From NCBI GenBank assembly GCA_964035545.1, contig CAXIUT010000004.1, forward strand, positions 1 through 47,478: a stretch of 47,478 nt of DNA. Reading direction: 5' to 3'. This document shows, piece by piece, positions 2,449 through 13,853 of the stretch; positions within the stretch are counted from its first letter, which is position 1; each line of letters begins with the position of its first letter. The position numbers and the translations under genes were made by a program. This stretch comes from Bugula neritina (Eukaryota; Animalia; Bryozoa). The notes below the pieces were generated by a model. It worked only from the letters and a program-made list of their open reading frames with translations. It had not been told where the DNA came from and did no database searches.

Positions 2449-4110
2449 CCCGTCCAGCACCGAACCATCAGAAAGCCAGCGCAGCGCTTTGGCTTTGTGT
2501 TGGGCGGTACTGGTACGGCAGCACTCAGTTTCTAAATCATTAGCGCGGGAGCGTGTCCGATCACAATCCGGACACGCTCATGTAAACCAAGCTTTTTTCT
2601 TTTGATCTTCTGCGCGTAGCGCCCAAACACCGCGCCCTGCGCACCGCACCGGTTTTCGCGAAGGGAGCGCAGCTCTACCCGTCGAAAGAGCTCAGCGCAG
2701 CGACCGCGAAGCGACAAAACCAAGGCGGCGCGGGGAGTAGACACCAACAGCCACGACCGCAGCGTTAAAACAATCCGTGTTCCAACCGCGCCGCAGCTTC
2801 ATCGCGGGGCAATAGGGCGGAACGCTTACGGTTTGTTTTCACGCGGAGAGAGCGACCGGCCCGACACCCGCACCAGGCAATTAAAGGCCGCCGCCACGAC
2901 CGCAACGTATCCCGCGAAGGGAGCGCAGCGACACCGCCGGGAGATCACCCGCGCAGCGACCACAAAAGGAGGCGCACGGGGGTTATCAGATAGGCACCAC
3001 CCGCACCCGCCGACATTGCGTAGAGCCGCGCCCAAACGAGCGAGGCCACCGGAGCCGTTACCGCAGCGACGGACTTAGGCCGCGTTTCGCCTGTCCCGCT
3101 CGCTGTTTAGCGGGGCAAGCCAGGCGAAACAAACCAGCGGCTTTAGTCCGACGCGGAGGGAACGAGCGCAGGGGGCAGAGTGAGAGCGGGCGCGGATCGG
3201 AGCAATAACAGACTAACCAGGTAAGGCGCACCGTTGGCCCTGTTGTTGCCTGCGTATAGGGTGGAGCCTGCGGAACCGTATTAAGCGAGCAAGAACCGGG
3301 ACAATGTGCGCATCACTCATGGGGAAATTTTACATAATAAAACTTTTCACGACTTTAGCCCCAAGCCGTACGGTCGGCGCGGGGCTAATGGCGTGACAAA
3401 GTCTATTATGTAACTTTTACCCATTCCTTAGCGTTCCAGAGCAGTACCAGGTACACCGACGCACCAGATCACATAAAACATAGCCCTGGCGTCCGGCTTG
3501 CTTTGGCAGGGGCAAGCATCATTTGGATATAAAAATATCCGGTTGCGCCTGACAAAATGCAAGCCGGATGCCAGGGCGAATTAACTGCGCTTCTGCGGCA
3601 AAATCTCCCCGGCACGGCGGCTGCGCAATACCACAGCCATCTGATCCGGTATGGCCTGCAAAACCGTCCAGTACGCACCATCTACCATCAGGGCACACAC
3701 TACCAGTACCCTCTAATCCTCTGCCAAACCCAAAAACAACAGCGCCAGATACACCACCAGAACAGCAGGAACAGCAGGAACAGCAGGAACAGCAGGAACA
3801 GCAGGAACAGCAGGAACAGCAGGAACAGCAGGAACAGCAACAGGATGGCATTGCAACTGCGTCAACAACAACCACTATGGCCATGCGTCGCGATTAGGGC
3901 TTTTAGCCGGTGGAGCGCAGCGGAACCGGTTTAAAGACCAAAGCGCGTAAGCATCACGGCTTTTCATTCCGTTTCGGTTTTCTTTTGGCGCAGCCAGAAG
4001 ATAGCCGGGACGGAATGTTGATGAATGCTGGCTTGTGTGGAGCTTGCGGAACAGAAGCCCTCTTAACTAAAGCGGCGCGATACACCCTATACCACAGCCG
4101 CCAGGTACCC
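2449..4110 (+). other. Gene-poor, GC-rich tract of long hairpins; candidate single-strand origin/ssi-like region
   Basis: Hairpins at about 2449-2518, 2549-2579, 3070-3150, 3202-3249, 3319-3424, 3483-3577, 3897-3939; repeated GCGCAGC/GCGAAGC mini-hairpins. Confidence 0.6.
3760..3840 (+). repeat. 9-bp tandem repeat (GAACAGCAG) x9
   Basis: 8 exact copies plus GAACAGCAA. Confidence 0.95.
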
Positions 4111-5087: not shown

Positions 5088-5744
5088 ATGATGGTATACC
5101 TGAAAATCAGGCGTTCAAAAAGCCAGATACGCGCGACCGGTTTGCGCTATGCAACCCCGATAGTGATCACGAAAACCGCTAAATACGGTGATGTACTAAG
5201 TGAAAGAGTGATTTCCATTAAAAAACCGATACTGATTACTGGTGAGCCGGATTCAGGTAAAACCCGCTGGCTCAATCGCTTGCATAAACATGCAGTAGAG
5301 ATTTGGGGATTTAAAAGTAAATCTGAGCCACTGTGGCTGGAGGCACGGCAACCAGTGGTGGAATGGTTTAAAGCACCTGCGGTAAAAATCTGGTGGCGAC
5401 AACAGCAGAAAACACGCCCGGAGTCTGAACGCCAAACCTGGACATCACTCAACCATAAGGAACGCTCACAGGTATTAGTGGATTACTGCAAAGGTACCGG
5501 GGCAGTCGTCTTTCTTGATGATGCACATAAACTGGGTGGCTCGGCGCTGACACTGGCAAAGCAATGCATAGCGGCAGCACGGGTATGGGTTGTCGCTGCT
5601 TATCGGGAGCCACATATTCCAGCGCAGTTACTGGAGACAATGGAGAACACTTCAACACAACGCTTTGAGTTGTATTTTTTTCCTAAAGCACAGCGGATCT
5701 ATCGAACCGATAAGCCTGTGTTTGCTGAAACACCGCCCAACTAA
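5088..5744 (+). CDS. P-loop NTPase, soluble paralog of 6656..7384
   Basis: Walker A GEPDSGKT, Walker B VVFLDDAH; collinear with the 6656 protein but lacks the C-terminal hydrophobic tail. Confidence 0.8.
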   Translation: MMVYLKIRRSKSQIRATGLRYATPIVITKTAKYGDVLSERVISIKKPILITGEPDSGKTRWLNRLHKHAVEIWGFKSKSEPLWLEARQPVVEWFKAPAVKIWWRQQQKTRPESERQTWTSLNHKERSQVLVDYCKGTGAVVFLDDAHKLGGSALTLAKQCIAAARVWVVAAYREPHIPAQLLETMENTSTQRFELYFFPKAQRIYRTDKPVFAETPPN

Positions 5745-6346
5745 ACCTCAACTTTGCGCCGTTCAATCCACTCATAAAGCGTACTGGGTGAACAATCCAC
5801 CAGCTTACAAATAGCCCGTTTGCTGATCCCGAGTTCCAAATATTTGCGGATCTCCTTGCTCTTATTATCCAACTTTACCCGCTTAGCTTTACCCTTTGGC
5901 CGCCCCAAAACCATGCCTTCAGCCTTGCGTTTTGCCAGTGCTTCCTTAGTCCGCATCGAGATAAATTCGCGCTCAATCTCAGCCGCTAAACCCAAAACTG
6001 TCGCCGTGATTCTGGAGTTTAACGAGTCATCAAATACCATGTTCTGCTTCACGATATGCACGACAAATTCACGCTCCGCGCAGTAGGCTAACACCTCTAA
6101 AATTTGCAGTACGGAACGTGCCATTCTGGAGACTTCCGCAAACAAGATTGTGTCACCTGGCTGCATGGTTTTGGTCAGCAGCTCACCCATTTTTCTATCC
6201 TTCCAATTGGTCTTACCTGAGGCGTTATCTTCCACAAATTGCAGGCCTCCCAAATTATGCGTATTTGCATATTCGAGAATTCCGTGGCGTTGATTATCAA
6301 CGTCCTGATCATCAGTACTCACGCGCAAATAGGCATACACTCCCAT
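5741..6346 (-). CDS. Serine recombinase (resolvase/invertase, Mpi-like subgroup)
   Basis: AYLRVSTDDQ catalytic Ser, SRMARS, AEIEREFISMRTKEAL..GRPKG, C-terminal HTH. Confidence 0.95.
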   Translation of the reverse strand: MGVYAYLRVSTDDQDVDNQRHGILEYANTHNLGGLQFVEDNASGKTNWKDRKMGELLTKTMQPGDTILFAEVSRMARSVLQILEVLAYCAEREFVVHIVKQNMVFDDSLNSRITATVLGLAAEIEREFISMRTKEALAKRKAEGMVLGRPKGKAKRVKLDNKSKEIRKYLELGISKRAICKLVDCSPSTLYEWIERRKVEV

Positions 6347-6655
6347 TGTCCTACACTTCCCTAAGTTGTTTAAAAAATATTCAGCTTATACTATCTCATA
6401 AACGTTTGATTTTTAAAGTATGAAAACCAACTGCTATAACCGCTGGTTATTTTCCAACAAAATACCTGCTTGTTTTTTAAGCATTGTTACGTTATATTTT
6501 TACCCCCTTTCAGAGTCTGCGATTCAACTCTGAACGCGTCCAGCTAAAACAATGATTTAGCGGATGGGGCTATGTGTAATCATTAAAAAATATACCCTCT
6601 GGGTACATGAGTTTCGAGCGGGGGCCGGAATTCATCAAAAGGGCTTAATACCAAC

Positions 6656-7384
6656 ATGGAATACCTAAAAATCAAGCGTGCCCAAAGTCAGGTGCGTGCG
6701 GATGGTTCACGCTATGCCGTCCCGCTGCTGATTTCCAAAACTAAGAAGTACGGCAAGGTCACCAGCGAACAAGCTATCTCACGCAAAAAACCGATTCTCA
6801 TCACCGGCGCACACGACTCCGGAAAGACACGCTGGGTCACTCGCCTGCATGAACACGCCACCGAAATTTGGGGCGCAAAAATCAAAGCACCCCCGGTGTT
6901 TCTCGACACCCTCAGTCCGCTCTCAGCATGGTGCGATAATCCCGCCGTTGGCGAGTGGTGGAACGAAGAACAACAGAAGCTTCCCCTCGATGATCGACTG
7001 CCCTGGAAAAAGCTCAAACAACACGAACGTTCCGATGCGCTCGCGAGCTACTGCAAAACCAAACAGCCCGTCCTGTTCATCGACGATGCGCACAAGCTCG
7101 TGGGTAGAAAATTACAAATAGCCCGCCAGTGCGTCATGGCTACCCGCCTCACGGTGGTAGCAACCTCAGAAGAACAACGTCTCCCCCCTAACCTGCGCCC
7201 GGTACTACTGCGGCGCGACCCCCAGATTTTCAGACTTGATTCAGAGGTTGCTTATGACGCCACTCACATTCTCATGTGGTTTATTCTTATTTCTTGCCTC
7301 GCCATCGGTTGGTGGGAAGCTGCGCTGGTTATCGGTGGCCTTAAAGCACTTGGCAATGGTCGCCGTGCTGCTCGTGCCGATTGA
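6656..7384 (+). CDS. P-loop NTPase (AAA-like) with C-terminal membrane anchor
   Basis: Walker A GAHDSGKT, Walker B VLFIDDAH, hydrophobic tail ILMWFILISCLAIGWWEAALVIGGL. Confidence 0.85.
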   Translation: MEYLKIKRAQSQVRADGSRYAVPLLISKTKKYGKVTSEQAISRKKPILITGAHDSGKTRWVTRLHEHATEIWGAKIKAPPVFLDTLSPLSAWCDNPAVGEWWNEEQQKLPLDDRLPWKKLKQHERSDALASYCKTKQPVLFIDDAHKLVGRKLQIARQCVMATRLTVVATSEEQRLPPNLRPVLLRRDPQIFRLDSEVAYDATHILMWFILISCLAIGWWEAALVIGGLKALGNGRRAARAD

Positions 7385-8189
7385 AGCGCATTCAGACCCC
7401 CTGTATGCCGCTGACATCGCTCAACCCATAGAAATCCATGAAGAGTTATTTACAAACGATCCTGAGGCTACTCAGGCGGCGACAGACCTGCTTTACAGCT
7501 TCTGGCCCTGGAAAAATGAAACCGCACAAAAACCACCACCAGTGGAACCGTACCGAATCCCCACTCTCAACGGCGGCGTGTCTAACTACAAAAGCAAACC
7601 ACCAGCACTGGTACAGGCCCCCAACATCGACACCGATGCGGTGTATGCATACGTCCTCGCCTGTTATCCCGCCCGCAGCAAATGGAACATCAATGTAGAC
7701 CTGCGCGCCCAAATGGCCCGCTCCGCCGCACTGGGAAACAGTATCCTCAACAGCAACGGCGCGGACACCACCGAGCTTGGCAGCAACTACGTCGCCATTG
7801 TGGCCAGCATGCCGCTGTACTCCAGCAAGGAACTCAACCGCGAAAAAGAACGCGAAGCCATGCGCCGCCAAACCACCGCTACCATCGTGGCCGACTTCGT
7901 GGAAGCCATCGCCAACCGCAACCTTGCAACCCGCGAACTGGCGTTATACCGCAGCTTGGAAAGCCGCTCCGCCCTACGCGTCCAACAGGGCATTTCAGAG
8001 GCCAAAGAACAAATGGGCTACCTCGAAAAAGTCGCCACCAGCCGCCGCGACCTTACCAAGCAGGAAGCCAAAATCACCGAAACCCGCCTCAAACTTTCCG
8101 GACTGTGCGATCCGCGCAACGCCAGAACCATCAACACCTGGCTGAAAAATATTTCGGCGGTGCCACAGAAGGAAATGGCGCAGCGATGA
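7236..8189 (+). CDS. Exported protein with one TolC/OEP-like repeat (true start probably GTG 7335 or ATG 7356)
   Basis: Signal-like MALKHLAMVAVLLVPIEAHS; YP-strand, VASMPLY, long helices, RVQQGI, LKLSGL pattern; ATGA-coupled to next gene. Confidence 0.7.
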   Translation: MIQRLLMTPLTFSCGLFLFLASPSVGGKLRWLSVALKHLAMVAVLLVPIEAHSDPLYAADIAQPIEIHEELFTNDPEATQAATDLLYSFWPWKNETAQKPPPVEPYRIPTLNGGVSNYKSKPPALVQAPNIDTDAVYAYVLACYPARSKWNINVDLRAQMARSAALGNSILNSNGADTTELGSNYVAIVASMPLYSSKELNREKEREAMRRQTTATIVADFVEAIANRNLATRELALYRSLESRSALRVQQGISEAKEQMGYLEKVATSRRDLTKQEAKITETRLKLSGLCDPRNARTINTWLKNISAVPQKEMAQR

Positions 8190-8710
8190 AATGGATTAAT
8201 CATCTCGCTATTGCAGGCGCAACCACCGCCGTAATCAGCCCGGTACTGGTGCCTATTGCCCTACTTGGCTCGACCGCGCCGGACTGGCTGGAATGGATTA
8301 TAAAAGCCATTACCGGTCAGGACGTAAAACACCGGGGTGTCACGCACTACCTGTTGGTTTGGCTTATCGCGCTATTGTTCGCACTCCTACTTTGGGACTT
8401 TCACGGCCTCCTTGCCGCTTTCTGTTGGGGTGGCCTTACGCATATCTTCGCGGATTCAATGACCGTTACTGGCGTACCCTTCTCACCCTACTCTGATCGG
8501 CGCTTCCACCTGTTTGGGGGACGACTTCGCACGGGAGAAGCAGGAGAATATGCAGTCGCATGGGGTATTGTGGCGATATGCGCGGTAGCGATGCAGTTGG
8601 TGCATACCAGCAACAACTGGTATCCGTTTTTCTACGATTGGCCAGGACTGTATGAGGAAGGGCTGATTGATGGCAAAGAGTGGAAAGACAACCGGTTCAG
8701 GTTCTTCTGA
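8186..8710 (+). CDS. YdjM-like inner-membrane metal-dependent hydrolase
   Basis: N-terminal H, GSTAPD, HRGVTH, HIFADSMT..GVP motifs, several TM helices; real ATG at 8186 overlaps upstream TGA. Confidence 0.88.
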   Translation: MKWINHLAIAGATTAVISPVLVPIALLGSTAPDWLEWIIKAITGQDVKHRGVTHYLLVWLIALLFALLLWDFHGLLAAFCWGGLTHIFADSMTVTGVPFSPYSDRRFHLFGGRLRTGEAGEYAVAWGIVAICAVAMQLVHTSNNWYPFFYDWPGLYEEGLIDGKEWKDNRFRFF

Positions 8711-9081
8711 TGCGCGTATTTTTCCTGCTGATTCTCGCGCTGGCCTTATGTTCCGGCACAACTGCAAGCGCCAAATCGAAGAAGAAAGAAAAACACTACC
8801 AGGCGGAATGGTGCGCGGAAAAAGGCGAAACCGAACACGTACTCCCCGACCGTACCCGCATCGATTGCCTCACCGTAAGCCACGCCATTGAATTCGACTG
8901 GGGTAAGAAATGGCATGAAGGCATAGGCCAAAGCCTGTACTACGCGGTACAGACTGATAGGCGAGCGGGTGTGGTGTTGATCATCAAACGGCGTAAGCAC
9001 TACAAATACTGGATCCGGTTAAACAGCACGATTGAACACCATGCATTACCGATTGATACCTGGCTAATCGAAGACTACTAA
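8710..9081 (+). CDS. Exported small PD-(D/E)xK-fold nuclease-like protein
   Basis: Signal peptide MRVFFLLILALALCSGTTASA; E...RID...AIEFD...GQSLYY motif; TGATG coupling. Confidence 0.7.
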   Translation: MRVFFLLILALALCSGTTASAKSKKKEKHYQAEWCAEKGETEHVLPDRTRIDCLTVSHAIEFDWGKKWHEGIGQSLYYAVQTDRRAGVVLIIKRRKHYKYWIRLNSTIEHHALPIDTWLIEDY

Positions 9082-9467: not shown

Positions 9468-9546
9468 CGGAATGCTAATACGTCAAAACGGAATGCTAAT
9501 ACGATAAAACGGAATGCTAATACGATGCAGGCGGAATGCTAATACG
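9468..9546 (+). repeat. Iterons of oriV: four copies of CGGAATGCTAATACG
   Basis: Copies start at 9468, 9489, 9510, 9532 (21/21/22-bp period); degenerate fifth copy CGGAACGTAAATACG at 9724-9738. Confidence 0.92.
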
Positions 9547-9551
9547 ATGCT

Positions 9552-9560: not shown

Positions 9561-9754
9561 GGTAAGAGCACCTTACTGCCCCAAAAAAGTACAGAAAATA
9601 AACAGGTACTTAACCAAGGAGTATTATTTCCTTGGTTTGTCTAATTTTTAATCATTGGAATTAAATAAAATATGACCCGTCATTTACATAACAGATTGAA
9701 ATAATAAATTTTTTTATGGCAAGCGGAACGTAAATACGATGATAGCAAGCAAGA

Positions 9755-10603
9755 TCAGGGCGCTATTACCCGCTCAAAAACAATCTGTTCCTTGCCTGAC
9801 TTCCCAGTCTCAATTCTGGGGCGGCGCACGATGTGCAAACGCTTGAGTTCATCGAAAGCCGCTTTGATCGCTTCACGGAATTTACGCATGGGTGAGGTGT
9901 ACTGCATGCGCTCTTTCAGATCGTCCAGGGGGTAACGCTGGATTTTGTTATCGCTGGTTGCAATCAGACACTGTAGCCACTTCGCCATATCGACCTGTTT
10001 ACTGATCTGGAAGCGCTTTTCCCAACAGATCAGGGCAAACTCGCGATTACTAAATAGCATTTTCATCCGTGGATCGATGCGCAGCTGATACTCGCCCTCT
10101 TCCGGCAGGTAATCAAAGCTATCCAGCAAATGCATAGCGCGCGATTTGGGGTTATTACCAATCTGATAATGCTTGGTTTCAATGATCAGGCCGCCACTCC
10201 ATAACCGCTCGAAACTCTCATGTAGCATTTTATATTCCTGGCCGCTGGTCTTACGTCCGATAGAGCGCAGGAACGCCGCACGGTTAATAACGGTGGCTTC
10301 CCCTAATGGTTGTTGTTGTGCGGTATGTAGTGCCTGCATAAAAACATCGCGGTCACGCTCGTCCAGCTGTTTCCCGGTATAAAAAATACGAACATCACGA
10401 CGGCTGGCTAACTCCACGCGGTCATGTAGCTTGCGGCGACCCCGGGCAATGGGCGCAAACAAGCTGGAACGCGCCAGATGATTAGGAATAGCCCGCTCCA
10501 GGTCTTTCCATAGCGGCAGTTGCACCATCTTGGCCTGTGGTGTCTGCGCATTTTGTTTAGCCTGCTCAGCCTTCTGTTCCAGCCAGTCGGGTAGGATATT
10601 CAT
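9755..10603 (-). CDS. trfA: TrfA-family plasmid replication initiator
   Basis: QLPLW clamp-binding motif, RAIPNHLARSSLF, YTGKQLD..D.DV; adjacent iterons. Confidence 0.9.
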   Translation of the reverse strand: MNILPDWLEQKAEQAKQNAQTPQAKMVQLPLWKDLERAIPNHLARSSLFAPIARGRRKLHDRVELASRRDVRIFYTGKQLDERDRDVFMQALHTAQQQPLGEATVINRAAFLRSIGRKTSGQEYKMLHESFERLWSGGLIIETKHYQIGNNPKSRAMHLLDSFDYLPEEGEYQLRIDPRMKMLFSNREFALICWEKRFQISKQVDMAKWLQCLIATSDNKIQRYPLDDLKERMQYTSPMRKFREAIKAAFDELKRLHIVRRPRIETGKSGKEQIVFERVIAP

Positions 10604-11794: not shown

Positions 11795-12418
11795 TTACAA
11801 CTTGTTAGCCAGCTCAATCAAGTGACTCCAATCACGCACCAAACTGTTATTAAGGCAGCTAATTAATTTCTCTTCTAACAGATGTCGATCATGCAATTGT
11901 CCGGCATCGGCCATGTTCCAGCCCGGATGATCTTTACCCAATATCCGGCCCCGGATCGCTTTGGCTACATTGATGTAATGATGCTTTTGCGCAGGCTTAC
12001 CCAGCACACGCTCCGCCGAAATATTGATAGCCTCGCTCATCGCCTTATAAGCTTCGCCGGAGTCATCCCGCGCCTGTAATATCCGGTGATTAATAAAGAT
12101 GGTGTACACCTCATCCTTGAACTCAGGGGACAAGCTCACCGCCGCATCCAGCAATATTTTCAGGTGGGCATACGTGCCACCGCCTTTACCTCTGCGACGT
12201 TCTAACGCCGGTCTACCCAACTGATCCGAAACCAATTCCACATACTCAGTCACATCCTGGCGCTGTACCCATGAGGCCAGCATCAGGGAAGGTTTACCAG
12301 ACTGCTGGCGGTAGACATTACCCAAATCAAACACATCATTGAGCTTTCCCATGTGCGAGCTGTGCCAGATACTGACAGTGCCAAATTTGAAGGGGACATG
12401 TAGCAGCGTATCGTTCAT
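11795..12418 (-). CDS. KilA-N domain DNA-binding protein
   Basis: LNDVF..., RRGKGGGTYAH..L.D.A..LSPEFK.EV motif. Confidence 0.85.
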   Translation of the reverse strand: MNDTLLHVPFKFGTVSIWHSSHMGKLNDVFDLGNVYRQQSGKPSLMLASWVQRQDVTEYVELVSDQLGRPALERRRGKGGGTYAHLKILLDAAVSLSPEFKDEVYTIFINHRILQARDDSGEAYKAMSEAINISAERVLGKPAQKHHYINVAKAIRGRILGKDHPGWNMADAGQLHDRHLLEEKLISCLNNSLVRDWSHLIELANKL

Positions 12419-12584
12419 AGCGGGGTTCCTTTAATATGCATTTCAAAATACTTGTTAAACATGTTATACACTTTAACCACATAATATATTATGATAATAT
12501 ATTTTACAAGCTTGTTGTAAGACACATTTAAAACCCGCAATACATCAGGCACGAACCCACTTTGACTGCTTAAAGAGCATTACG

Positions 12585-13853
12585 ATGATCCACCCAAATT
12601 CAGACTACTCTTCAAAATTATTAGCACTGCGTACCCGGCTCAACAGTCTCTTAGGGCGGCAATCTCAGAAAGCCGACCGCTGGTTAGCCAACATGCCTTT
12701 GTTCGTGGACACAGAAACGACCGGGCTGGACGAAAACGCCCAAATCATAGAAATCGCGTTAGTGGATGCTTCAGAATATGTCTATTTCCAAACACGCTTA
12801 AAGCCAACAGTCAGTATTAGTCCGGAGGCCAGCAACGTGCATGGCATCACCGACGCGGATCTGATCGATGCTCCCAGCTGGCCGGACGTTGCCACACAGT
12901 TAAATCAAATGATAAAAGGTCGCCAGCTGATTGCCTTTAACAGCGACTTTGACCAGCGCCTCATCATACAAACCGCGCAAGCCTTCGGTGATCAGGAATC
13001 AGTTCAGCACTGGCAAGACACCGGTAAATTTCAATGCGCCATGAAATTAGCCGCAGAGACTTACCCGGATGAAACTAACCGCTATGGCACTATCTCGCTG
13101 GACAGTGCGATCCGTTGTGCGCGTACTGACTGGCCCGGCACAGCTCATAGTGCAGTGGTGGACGCCACAGCCACGGTGCGTGTCGTCCAGGCGATTGCGA
13201 ATTTCCATAAGCCATTACAAACCGAAATAAACCAAATCACCGCTTTTTCCCAATTCCCCGATTACTTATCTGAAGAAGAGCAAACACTGGCTAAATACCT
13301 GCTCAACAAAGTGTATCAACCGCTAGCGATCGCCAATGTAGCAACATGGGCCGAAACTAAGGGTGGTAAAGGTAAATTCATGGATGTGCTCGCCTGGCTG
13401 AGTTATGAATACAGCCAGCTAGAGGATGACGATGAAAGCGGAATCAAGATGACAAAATACTGGGTCGATAGGTGGCTAGATGGCAGCCTGATGGCAAGCT
13501 GTCCCAGCTCTGTCCTGGGGTGCGAAGATGAATATGAGCTAATTTTCCCGCCGGGCACTTCCATGCAACAACAATGGCTGGCACTACACCGGCTGCAAGA
13601 CATTATCATCATAGATTTAGTCATCAACAATCAAACACTCTTAGATGCCTGGGCTTTGCGCCTACATCAGGCTGGCGATGAAGCAGATACCATGGCTATT
13701 CTTGCCAACATTTGCGATCAATTCCCAATGGAAGGGTGGAAGTATCCAACAACAGACCTCGCTAATTTCGAACTCCCCATTGGCGACTGTCTACCTATTC
13801 TCGAAGATGCCAGGCAATGGCGACAGCACCACGCTAAACGAAGGCCTATGTGA
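12585..13853 (+). CDS. DEDDh (DnaQ-like) 3'-5' exonuclease with unknown C-terminal domain
   Basis: DTETTG, AFNSDFD, AHSAVVDA. Confidence 0.88.
   Translation: MIHPNSDYSSKLLALRTRLNSLLGRQSQKADRWLANMPLFVDTETTGLDENAQIIEIALVDASEYVYFQTRLKPTVSISPEASNVHGITDADLIDAPSWPDVATQLNQMIKGRQLIAFNSDFDQRLIIQTAQAFGDQESVQHWQDTGKFQCAMKLAAETYPDETNRYGTISLDSAIRCARTDWPGTAHSAVVDATATVRVVQAIANFHKPLQTEINQITAFSQFPDYLSEEEQTLAKYLLNKVYQPLAIANVATWAETKGGKGKFMDVLAWLSYEYSQLEDDDESGIKMTKYWVDRWLDGSLMASCPSSVLGCEDEYELIFPPGTSMQQQWLALHRLQDIIIIDLVINNQTLLDAWALRLHQAGDEADTMAILANICDQFPMEGWKYPTTDLANFELPIGDCLPILEDARQWRQHHAKRRPM

Follow-up and report, generated by a model that had tools for sequence, protein, structure and literature searches.

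Membrane-anchored AAA_22 ATPases of the GspA/ExeA kind serve type II secretion, the parCBA stabilisation locus of RK2/RP4 combines a serine resolvase with a nuclease, and the ydjM gene of Escherichia coli is regulated by the SOS response. Here we describe a plasmid locus that resembles each of these in part. It lies on contig CAXIUT010000004.1 of the Bugula neritina assembly GCA_964035545.1, of which we analyzed a stretch of 47,478 nt (hereafter the window) that represents a circular 41,163-bp plasmid followed by a 6,315-bp wrap. Three genes of this plasmid, designated g1, g2, and g3, constitute a translationally coupled operon in the backbone of widespread, mostly relaxase-less plasmids, and the operon has apparently not been described before. 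In the window a fourth gene, g4, follows directly. We tentatively propose that the products of g1, g2, and g3 form one ATP-driven envelope device dealing with DNA or nucleases, a reading to which we assign a probability of roughly one in three.

The g2 protein is compared here with canonical outer-membrane factors (OMFs), whose protomers consist of two repeats that arose by gene duplication (PMC8277102), and the g3 protein with the YdjM family, for which a link to the zinc phospholipase C / S1-P1 nuclease superfamily has been described (PMC8557891).

A Conserved Three-Gene Operon

An initial, sequence-only reading of the window had placed four overlapping genes between a recombinase gene and oriV, and that placement was confirmed, as were the overlaps and motifs listed for them (Table 1). 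Translation of g2 probably starts at ATG 7254, where a GAGG Shine-Dalgarno motif lies six bases upstream. This start produces a 131-nt overlap with g1 that is also present in Thiothrix-like loci, and a start at ATG 7356 would overlap g1 too. The g2/g3 junction is an ATGA (8186–8189) and the g3/g4 junction a TGATG (8708–8712).

Table 1. Features of the operon and its surroundings, in window coordinates.
Feature	Coordinates	Strand	Description
g1 paralogue	5088–5744	+	218 aa; 48% identity to g1
Serine recombinase	5741–6346	-	Resolvase/invertase type; Pfam Resolvase E = 5.5e-30; divergent from g1
Recombinase-g1 intergenic region	6347–6655	.	Presumed promoters, perhaps a recombinase site
g1	6656–7384	+	Predicted membrane-tethered AAA+ ATPase, 242 aa
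g2	7254–8189 (alternative start 7356)	+	Putative exported single-repeat OEP/TolC-like protein, 311 aa
g3	8186–8710	+	Predicted YdjM-family membrane hydrolase, 174 aa
g4	8710–9081	+	Predicted accessory Sec-exported small protein, 123 aa
oriV	9468–9550, distal copy 9724–9742		Four tandem 21–22-bp iterons plus one distal copy, beside rep
TrfA-like rep gene	9755–10603	-	Adjoins the iterons

Related loci were collected by distant blastn and tblastn searches of PLSDB together with a pattern scan, keeping one genome per species, which yielded 69 additional loci. All three genes were present, in identical order and on the same strand, in 48 of the 50 loci with enough flanking sequence. The g2 stop and g3 start overlapped by 4 or 1 nt in 42/67 loci and g1 overlapped g2 in 39/51, and the pairwise-identity matrices of the three proteins correlated with one another (Spearman 0.83–0.89 over 35 loci), as expected of co-inherited genes. 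The earlier claim of a conserved four-gene unit held for g1-g2-g3 and failed for g4, which rarely follows g3 and occurs in unrelated contexts. By this comparison the unit is one of three genes, not four, with g4 an exchangeable accessory. That g1 and g2 are fused or joined by a programmed frameshift was ruled out, as their overlap ranges from 4 to ~130 nt across lineages and some loci have gaps instead.

In PLSDB, g1, g2, and g3 occurred together on 48 plasmids (module counts ranged from 48 to 61), 44 of which (~92%) are typed as non-mobilizable. The carriers belong to Vibrio (25), Thiothrix (9), Photobacterium (6), Moritella, Aliivibrio, Methylocaldum, Methylomagnum, Thauera, and Xylophilus, and the megaplasmid of Shewanella oneidensis MR-1 is also among them. 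The closest relatives of the window's module genes were found on contigs of a metagenome-assembled genome of an uncultured member of the Thiotrichaceae and on Thiothrix plasmids. Five IMG/VR contigs carry the module as well; a phage origin was rejected, as g2 had no match in GenBank phages and the fold matches in BFVD were not meaningful.

Divergent copies are found on Campylobacter plasmids (g3-like, E = 6e-42; g2-like, profile E = 1.6e-5 to 1e-9; g1-like, 26% identity). The 5.4-kb plasmid pCC20JX12-5K has exactly five annotated genes, for Rep, a recombinase, and the g1-, g2-, and g3-like proteins, and the 5.2-kb pCJDM210S carries the same five plus one small open reading frame (ORF). The module occupies ~2 kb even of plasmids as small as 5 kb and so probably matters for how a plasmid persists or spreads. 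Decayed versions also occur: the 3.2-kb C. jejuni plasmid pCJ01 (locus L093) is reduced to Rep, an intact g3, and a remnant of g2, while in pSUIS6137 (L094) g1 survives as remnants beside intact g2- and g3-like genes. Because pCJ01 keeps Rep without an intact g1 or g2, the module is dispensable for replication and g3 on its own is tolerated. A replication or partition role for the module was rejected, given that the carriers have their own Rep plus ParA/ParB or ParG and that pCJ01 replicates without g1 and g2.

The Campylobacter plasmids that lost g1 or g2 and kept g3 also bear on whether the three proteins form a single machine. If the genes were co-transcribed with separate roles, or if g2 were a periplasmic coiled-coil protein, such losses would be easy to accommodate, as would the weak fold match of g2 and a helical hairpin that fits AcrA-type adaptors as well; moreover, every claim about the assembly of g1, g2, and g3 is inferred. 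We regard this explanation as distinctly unlikely in view of the near-perfect co-occurrence, the fixed order, the start/stop overlaps, and the correlated divergence across phyla, and because the g3 subfamily is found on plasmids almost only alongside g1 and g2.

One metagenomic ORF (P0192; L104, 594–1706) matches both the g2 and the g3 profiles and is either a fusion or the product of a 1-nt assembly error at the ATGA junction. On the Methylomagnum plasmid pRS11DPr6 (L009, 1621–4893) three extra genes lie between g1 and g2, encoding an Ig-like/CarboxypepD_reg protein, a 621-aa collagen-like protein, and a GspH/FimT pseudopilin, which hints at a link to pilus or type II secretion machinery in that lineage. 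In L006 (5645–5869) and 13 other loci, a family of acidic proteins of ~75 aa is encoded close to the module or the recombinase.

A Predicted Membrane-Tethered AAA+ ATPase

By its Walker motifs and modelled core fold, g1 is an AAA+ ATPase. Walker A (GAHDSGKT) spans residues 51–58 and Walker B (FIDDAH) residues 140–146; G51, G56, K57, D143, and D144 are invariant, as is E173, and R175 and R181 are kept in at least 90% of sequences. The AlphaFold 2 (AF2) model, with a predicted local distance difference test (pLDDT) score of 87.3, gave 302 fold matches in the PDB at E ≤ 1e-3, all of them AAA+ proteins (among them HslU, Cdc6/ORC, RFC, RuvB, and ClpX). At the sequence level, Pfam AAA_22 (20.4 bits, cut-off 27) and AAA_16 both matched below cut-off, and comparison with solved structures returned P-loop noise only.

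In the model, the N terminus forms a basic three-stranded sheet, and the last core strand is followed by two C-terminal helices (198–217 and 220–239) that include a hydrophobic segment (202–232; Kyte-Doolittle 1.97). After this hairpin comes a conserved basic tail, GRRAARAD. The hydrophobic hairpin would anchor the protein in the membrane. With Walker A and B, the AAA+ fold, and the hydrophobic C-terminal segment all present, the sequence-only description of g1 as a membrane-anchored P-loop NTPase with a basic N terminus stands.

A g1 paralogue is also encoded in the window; its gene runs towards the recombinase gene and overlaps it by 4 nt. The paralogue has intact Walker A and B motifs and no hydrophobic window, and might act as a soluble partner or competitor of g1. 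No second full-length g1 copy was seen in the other loci, one of which (L047) has a short partial g1-like ORF.

A Putative Exported Single-Repeat TolC-Like Protein

The g2 protein begins with a signal-peptide-like segment, followed by a Pro-rich linker and a short helix. Its AF2 model (pLDDT 74.7 overall and >90 in the helices) then shows a beta-hairpin (strands 149–156 and 178–185) and two long helices (191–244, 54 residues; 250–283, 34 residues). The strands are amphipathic and are separated by a 20-residue loop that is the least conserved folded segment of the protein, and Cys137 and Cys285 are invariant. The variable loop fits a surface loop, and together with the invariant cysteines it is what would be expected of an exported, surface-exposed protein.

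In a Foldseek search of the PDB, almost all of the top ~30 matches of the g2 model were TolC-family proteins (TolC, OprM, MtrE, CusC), only at E = 0.025–0.6 and TM ~0.25. Pfam OEP was the only family that recurred among g2 relatives (18/58, best E = 1.8e-5). The window's own g2 aligned to it at E = 0.11 (12.8 bits, cut-off 22; residues 142–278 on OEP positions 34–172) and had no match in Pfam, NCBIfam, PDB sequences, or PADLOC. An hhalign comparison with a thin TolC/CusC/MdtP profile aligned the hairpin and the PLYS motif with the second TolC repeat (E = 0.057). When 1.84 billion cluster representatives were searched with a profile, only 220 g2 relatives were recovered, with lengths of 74–370 aa among the 150 matches listed. 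We therefore regard g2, on consistent but individually weak evidence that in our view supports the label, as a putative "half-TolC": a small, discrete, half-size family with one OEP repeat. The earlier designation of g2 as exported and OEP-like is borne out by the signal peptide, the recurrence of OEP, and the Foldseek matches, the last only at E = 0.025 or weaker. The helical hairpin also superposes on AcrA-type adaptor hairpins, with a root-mean-square deviation of 1.4–2 Å over ~75 residues.

An OEP-like repeat, with an ATPase and a membrane protein encoded beside it, might suggest a TolC-type exporter of a small molecule or protein, similar to an efflux pump or type I secretion system, in which g1 would supply the energy and g2 the exit duct. 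The operon encodes no ABC, RND, or MFS transporter and no periplasmic adaptor, the signatures of g3 are those of a hydrolase and not of a transporter, and we know of no AAA+ ring that energises a TolC pump. We consider such an exporter very unlikely.

A Predicted Membrane Hydrolase of the YdjM Family

The third protein matches Pfam YdjM (PF04307) with 48.7 bits against a cut-off of 29 (E = 7.8e-13), in agreement with the earlier call of a membrane metal-dependent hydrolase. It is a predicted polytopic inner-membrane protein that carries the motif HRGVTH, and its invariant ligand-like residues are H6, D33, H49, H54, H86, and D90. All of the 54 g3 relatives examined match YdjM, and 45 of them also match Zn_dep_PLPC weakly. 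There was no match by sequence among solved structures, and PHROGs gave only generic hydrolase matches. From these profile matches, g3 is a YdjM-family predicted metal-dependent hydrolase of the zinc phospholipase C / S1-P1 nuclease superfamily. Regulation by the SOS response, as for E. coli ydjM, was rejected, as there is no LexA box upstream of g1.

A phospholipase-like g3 could act on membrane lipids. In this alternative, the module would serve defence, addiction, or competition, with g3 as a phospholipase C-like effector, g1 as an ATP-dependent sensor or regulator, and g2 as an envelope partner. Defence systems commonly pair an ATPase with a membrane effector, carrier plasmids are rich in restriction-modification systems and nucleases, and the Zn_dep_PLPC matches of most g3 relatives point the same way. 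YdjM is also related to alpha-toxin and HET-C and has been reported as a toxin module of RHS toxins (PMC8557891). On the other side, PADLOC matched none of the proteins, pCJ01 carries an intact g3 with Rep and without g1 or g2, so that a lone g3 is not lethal, and a lipid-directed role leaves both the exported TolC-like partner and the staphylococcal-nuclease (SNase) genes embedded in some of the operons unexplained. We judge it a possible, if unlikely, explanation.

Accessory Exported Proteins and a Possible Nuclease Link

As the sequence-only reading had noted, g4 starts with a signal-peptide-like segment. Its 78 relatives are all unnamed and without a Pfam domain; the invariant positions are Cys35, Cys53, E42, and D52, and at least 90% of sequences keep E61, D63, and K67. 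The PD-(D/E)xK-like nature proposed for g4 in the sequence-only reading was not confirmed: no significant match to Pfam or the PDB was found, with only faint hits to Tox-REase-9 in 2/30 relatives and to DUF2800 in 1/30, and a tblastn search of PLSDB plasmids returned no match. g4 follows g3 directly only in the window and in five other loci (L010, L034, L083–85); elsewhere it adjoins SNF2/DUF4391/methylase genes or integrase genes.

Other lineages carry a different small exported protein. In four methanotroph-type loci (L062–64, L074), a gene for an SNase homologue of 164–171 aa sits between g2 and g3, its stop abutting the g3 start; the homologue matches Pfam SNase at E = 1e-30 and bears a clear signal peptide. 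In L066–68 an SNase gene begins ~27 nt inside the end of g3, the slot held by g4 in the window, and in L072, L069, and L007 one lies 38–420 nt downstream of g3. The window itself has no SNase gene. By sequence, two unrelated families of small, predicted Sec-exported proteins, one of them a known nuclease family, are thus coupled to the module in different lineages. This coupling favors a DNA or nuclease link at the envelope and is the sole comparative hint to function. Of the roles proposed earlier (transfer, uptake, exclusion, defence, nuclease export), only the link to nucleases gains some support, through the operon-embedded SNase genes.

A Candidate Envelope Device

On the reading we prefer, g1 would form an AAA+ ring at the cytoplasmic face of the inner membrane, held there by its C-terminal hydrophobic hairpin, and g3 would be a polytopic, Zn-dependent hydrolase of the phospholipase C / P1 nuclease superfamily in the same membrane. 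g2 would be exported by the Sec pathway and inserted in the outer membrane as a single-repeat relative of TolC, six copies of which could build a 12-stranded barrel that matches a hexameric ATPase. Together, the three proteins would make up an ATP-driven envelope device serving the plasmid. Its task most likely concerns nucleic acid at the envelope, a statement in which our confidence is low: the device could help periplasmic nucleases to reach or act on DNA, or g3 could itself cleave DNA crossing the envelope, and the outcome would be a barrier to DNA arriving by transformation or from phage. A stronger version is a minimal trans-envelope nanomachine in which a hexameric AAA+ motor, a membrane Zn-hydrolase, and a hexameric, pre-duplication TolC-like channel move or process DNA, giving relaxase-less plasmids their own release or transfer route or a barrier. 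This version we hold to be improbable.

Several observations weigh against the proposed device. The connection between g2 and TolC is statistically weak (Foldseek E ≥ 0.025, window OEP E = 0.11, hhalign E = 0.057); among the 1.84 billion proteins searched, HMMER found no link from g2 to canonical OMFs, and none of the relatives listed was of two-repeat size. No periplasmic adaptor or known transporter is encoded in the operon. The metagenomic g2-g3 fusion, if real, would be hard to square with a g2 in the outer membrane. The activity predicted for YdjM in the literature is that of a phospholipase and not that of a nuclease (PMC8557891). Finally, most loci, including those of Vibrio, Thiothrix, and Campylobacter, have no accessory nuclease, so that nuclease export could be the core task only if g3 itself or a nuclease of the host served as substrate or effector.

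Recombinase Neighbor and Plasmid Setting

A serine recombinase gene is a frequent, not obligate, neighbor of the module: it lies within 1.5 kb upstream in 13/48 loci and within the fetched ~6-kb flanks in ~31/48. The recombinase of the window scores 201 bits against the NCBIfam Mpi-type invertase model, below the cut-off of 272. In the Campylobacter plasmids of ~5 kb the recombinase gene is 22 bp upstream of g1 in the same direction, and in pCC20JX12-5K and pCJDM210S the recombinase and module genes form a co-directional, tightly spaced string.

This arrangement is one reason to consider a minimal apparatus for DNA release or transfer, in which the g1 motor would move DNA through g3 and g2, possibly with the serine recombinase. 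The basic N terminus of g1 would suit such a motor, and ~92% of carriers are typed as non-mobilizable, yet the module is spread across Gamma-, Beta-, and Epsilonproteobacteria and different replicons. Such typing is common in plasmids of this size anyway, the flanks of 17/48 loci are without a recombinase, and g1, a small AAA+ core of generic type, does not resemble FtsK or VirD4. With no relaxase, oriT, pilus, or coupling-protein homologue found, we take a transfer apparatus to be quite improbable.

Returning to the window, a scan of all of its ORFs of at least 280 aa revealed no relaxase, coupling protein, VirB4-type ATPase, or type IV secretion protein, in keeping with the sequence-only statement that the plasmid has no conjugation genes. 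Besides its rep gene and iterons, the plasmid carries a ParA gene with an Arc/ParG-like partner, and its large cargo consists of copper-resistance and envelope genes (multicopper oxidase, CopB, CopD, Lnt, an M23 peptidase, a DsbA-like protein, and cytochromes c). PLSDB contained no match of near-identical DNA to the plasmid, and no Rfam RNA family was detected anywhere on it.

Promoter-like matches in the recombinase-g1 intergenic region were weak and at chance level. The region is bracketed by a 14-nt inverted repeat (6402–6415/6666–6679, one mismatch) that reaches codons 4–8 of g1, and inverted repeats of the TTTGATTTT type are present in L011 and L037 too. The 14-nt repeat could be a recombinase site or a chance occurrence. 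An invertible promoter between the recombinase gene and g1 was set aside, as this repeat and similar motifs are at chance level.

Elsewhere in the window, a perfect 9-bp tandem repeat, GAACAGCAG, is present in 8.9 copies at 3760–3839 and could be a slippage-prone tract; it falls within overlapping ORFs on opposite strands (3557–3934, +; 3519–3884, -), both without a Pfam match. The segment 1970–3500 has no ORF of at least 100 aa, raised GC (0.55), and a strong AT skew (0.22), and may be the "ssDNA-structured region" of the sequence-only reading. Genes for a KilA-N domain protein and a 422-aa RNase_T/DnaQ-like exonuclease (11795–13853) adjoin the partition genes.

Significance and Comparison With Known Systems

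Plasmids typed as non-mobilizable in Vibrio, Photobacterium, Campylobacter, and Shewanella, that is, in environmental and some clinical genera, carry backbone genes of obscure role, of which this module is an example. If g2 is a true single-repeat TolC relative, it would show what outer-membrane factors looked like before their internal duplication and would offer a simple model for the assembly of a barrel and alpha-tunnel. An AAA+ ATPase combined with a TolC-like duct and an enzyme of the phospholipase C / P1 nuclease type would, if confirmed, be a new kind of envelope system, and the link to exported nucleases points towards control of DNA uptake.

The earlier statement that no described system has this composition held up against PADLOC, Pfam, NCBIfam, the PDB, and the literature. 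PADLOC-DB v2 defence models gave noise-level matches only (E = 0.03–0.07), and no description of the module was found in the literature on Vibrio plasmids, Campylobacter cryptic plasmids, Shewanella plasmids, or half-TolC proteins.

The partial resemblances are nevertheless informative. Like parCBA, the module is a backbone locus that can stand beside a serine recombinase, and some of its relatives include an SNase-family gene; parCBA has no AAA+, OEP-like, or YdjM component. With GspA/ExeA the module shares a cytoplasmic P-loop domain of the AAA_22 kind, an inner-membrane tether, and an exported partner encoded alongside. It differs in that g1 has no periplasmic peptidoglycan-binding domain and only a sub-threshold AAA_22 match, and in that the module comes without a secretin gene.

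Tripartite efflux pumps and type I secretion systems also have an energised inner-membrane component that works with a TolC-like outer-membrane duct. Their ABC, RND, or MFS transporter and their adaptor are absent from the operon in the window and in related loci; the ATPase of the module is instead an AAA+ protein with a predicted C-terminal hairpin anchor, and the third part is a Zn-hydrolase-like membrane protein.

Relative to E. coli YdjM, g3 passes the Pfam YdjM threshold and retains the His/Asp metal ligands. It scores only 26.9 bits against the NCBIfam equivalog PRK11648 (cut-off 216), which marks a distinct plasmid subfamily. This subfamily shows a conserved C-terminal tail, and on plasmids it rarely occurs apart from g1 and g2.

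For g2, the likeness to TolC and other OMFs lies in the signal peptide, the amphipathic beta-hairpin, the long descending helix, and the returning helix, and a short helix apparently pinned to the returning helix by the two invariant cysteines recalls the pseudo-continuous helix of TolC. In contrast to the two repeats and ~430–500 aa of canonical OMFs, g2 proteins have one repeat in ~220–310 aa, and the g2 of the window scores below the Pfam threshold; with one repeat each, six copies of g2 rather than three would be needed for a 12-stranded barrel.

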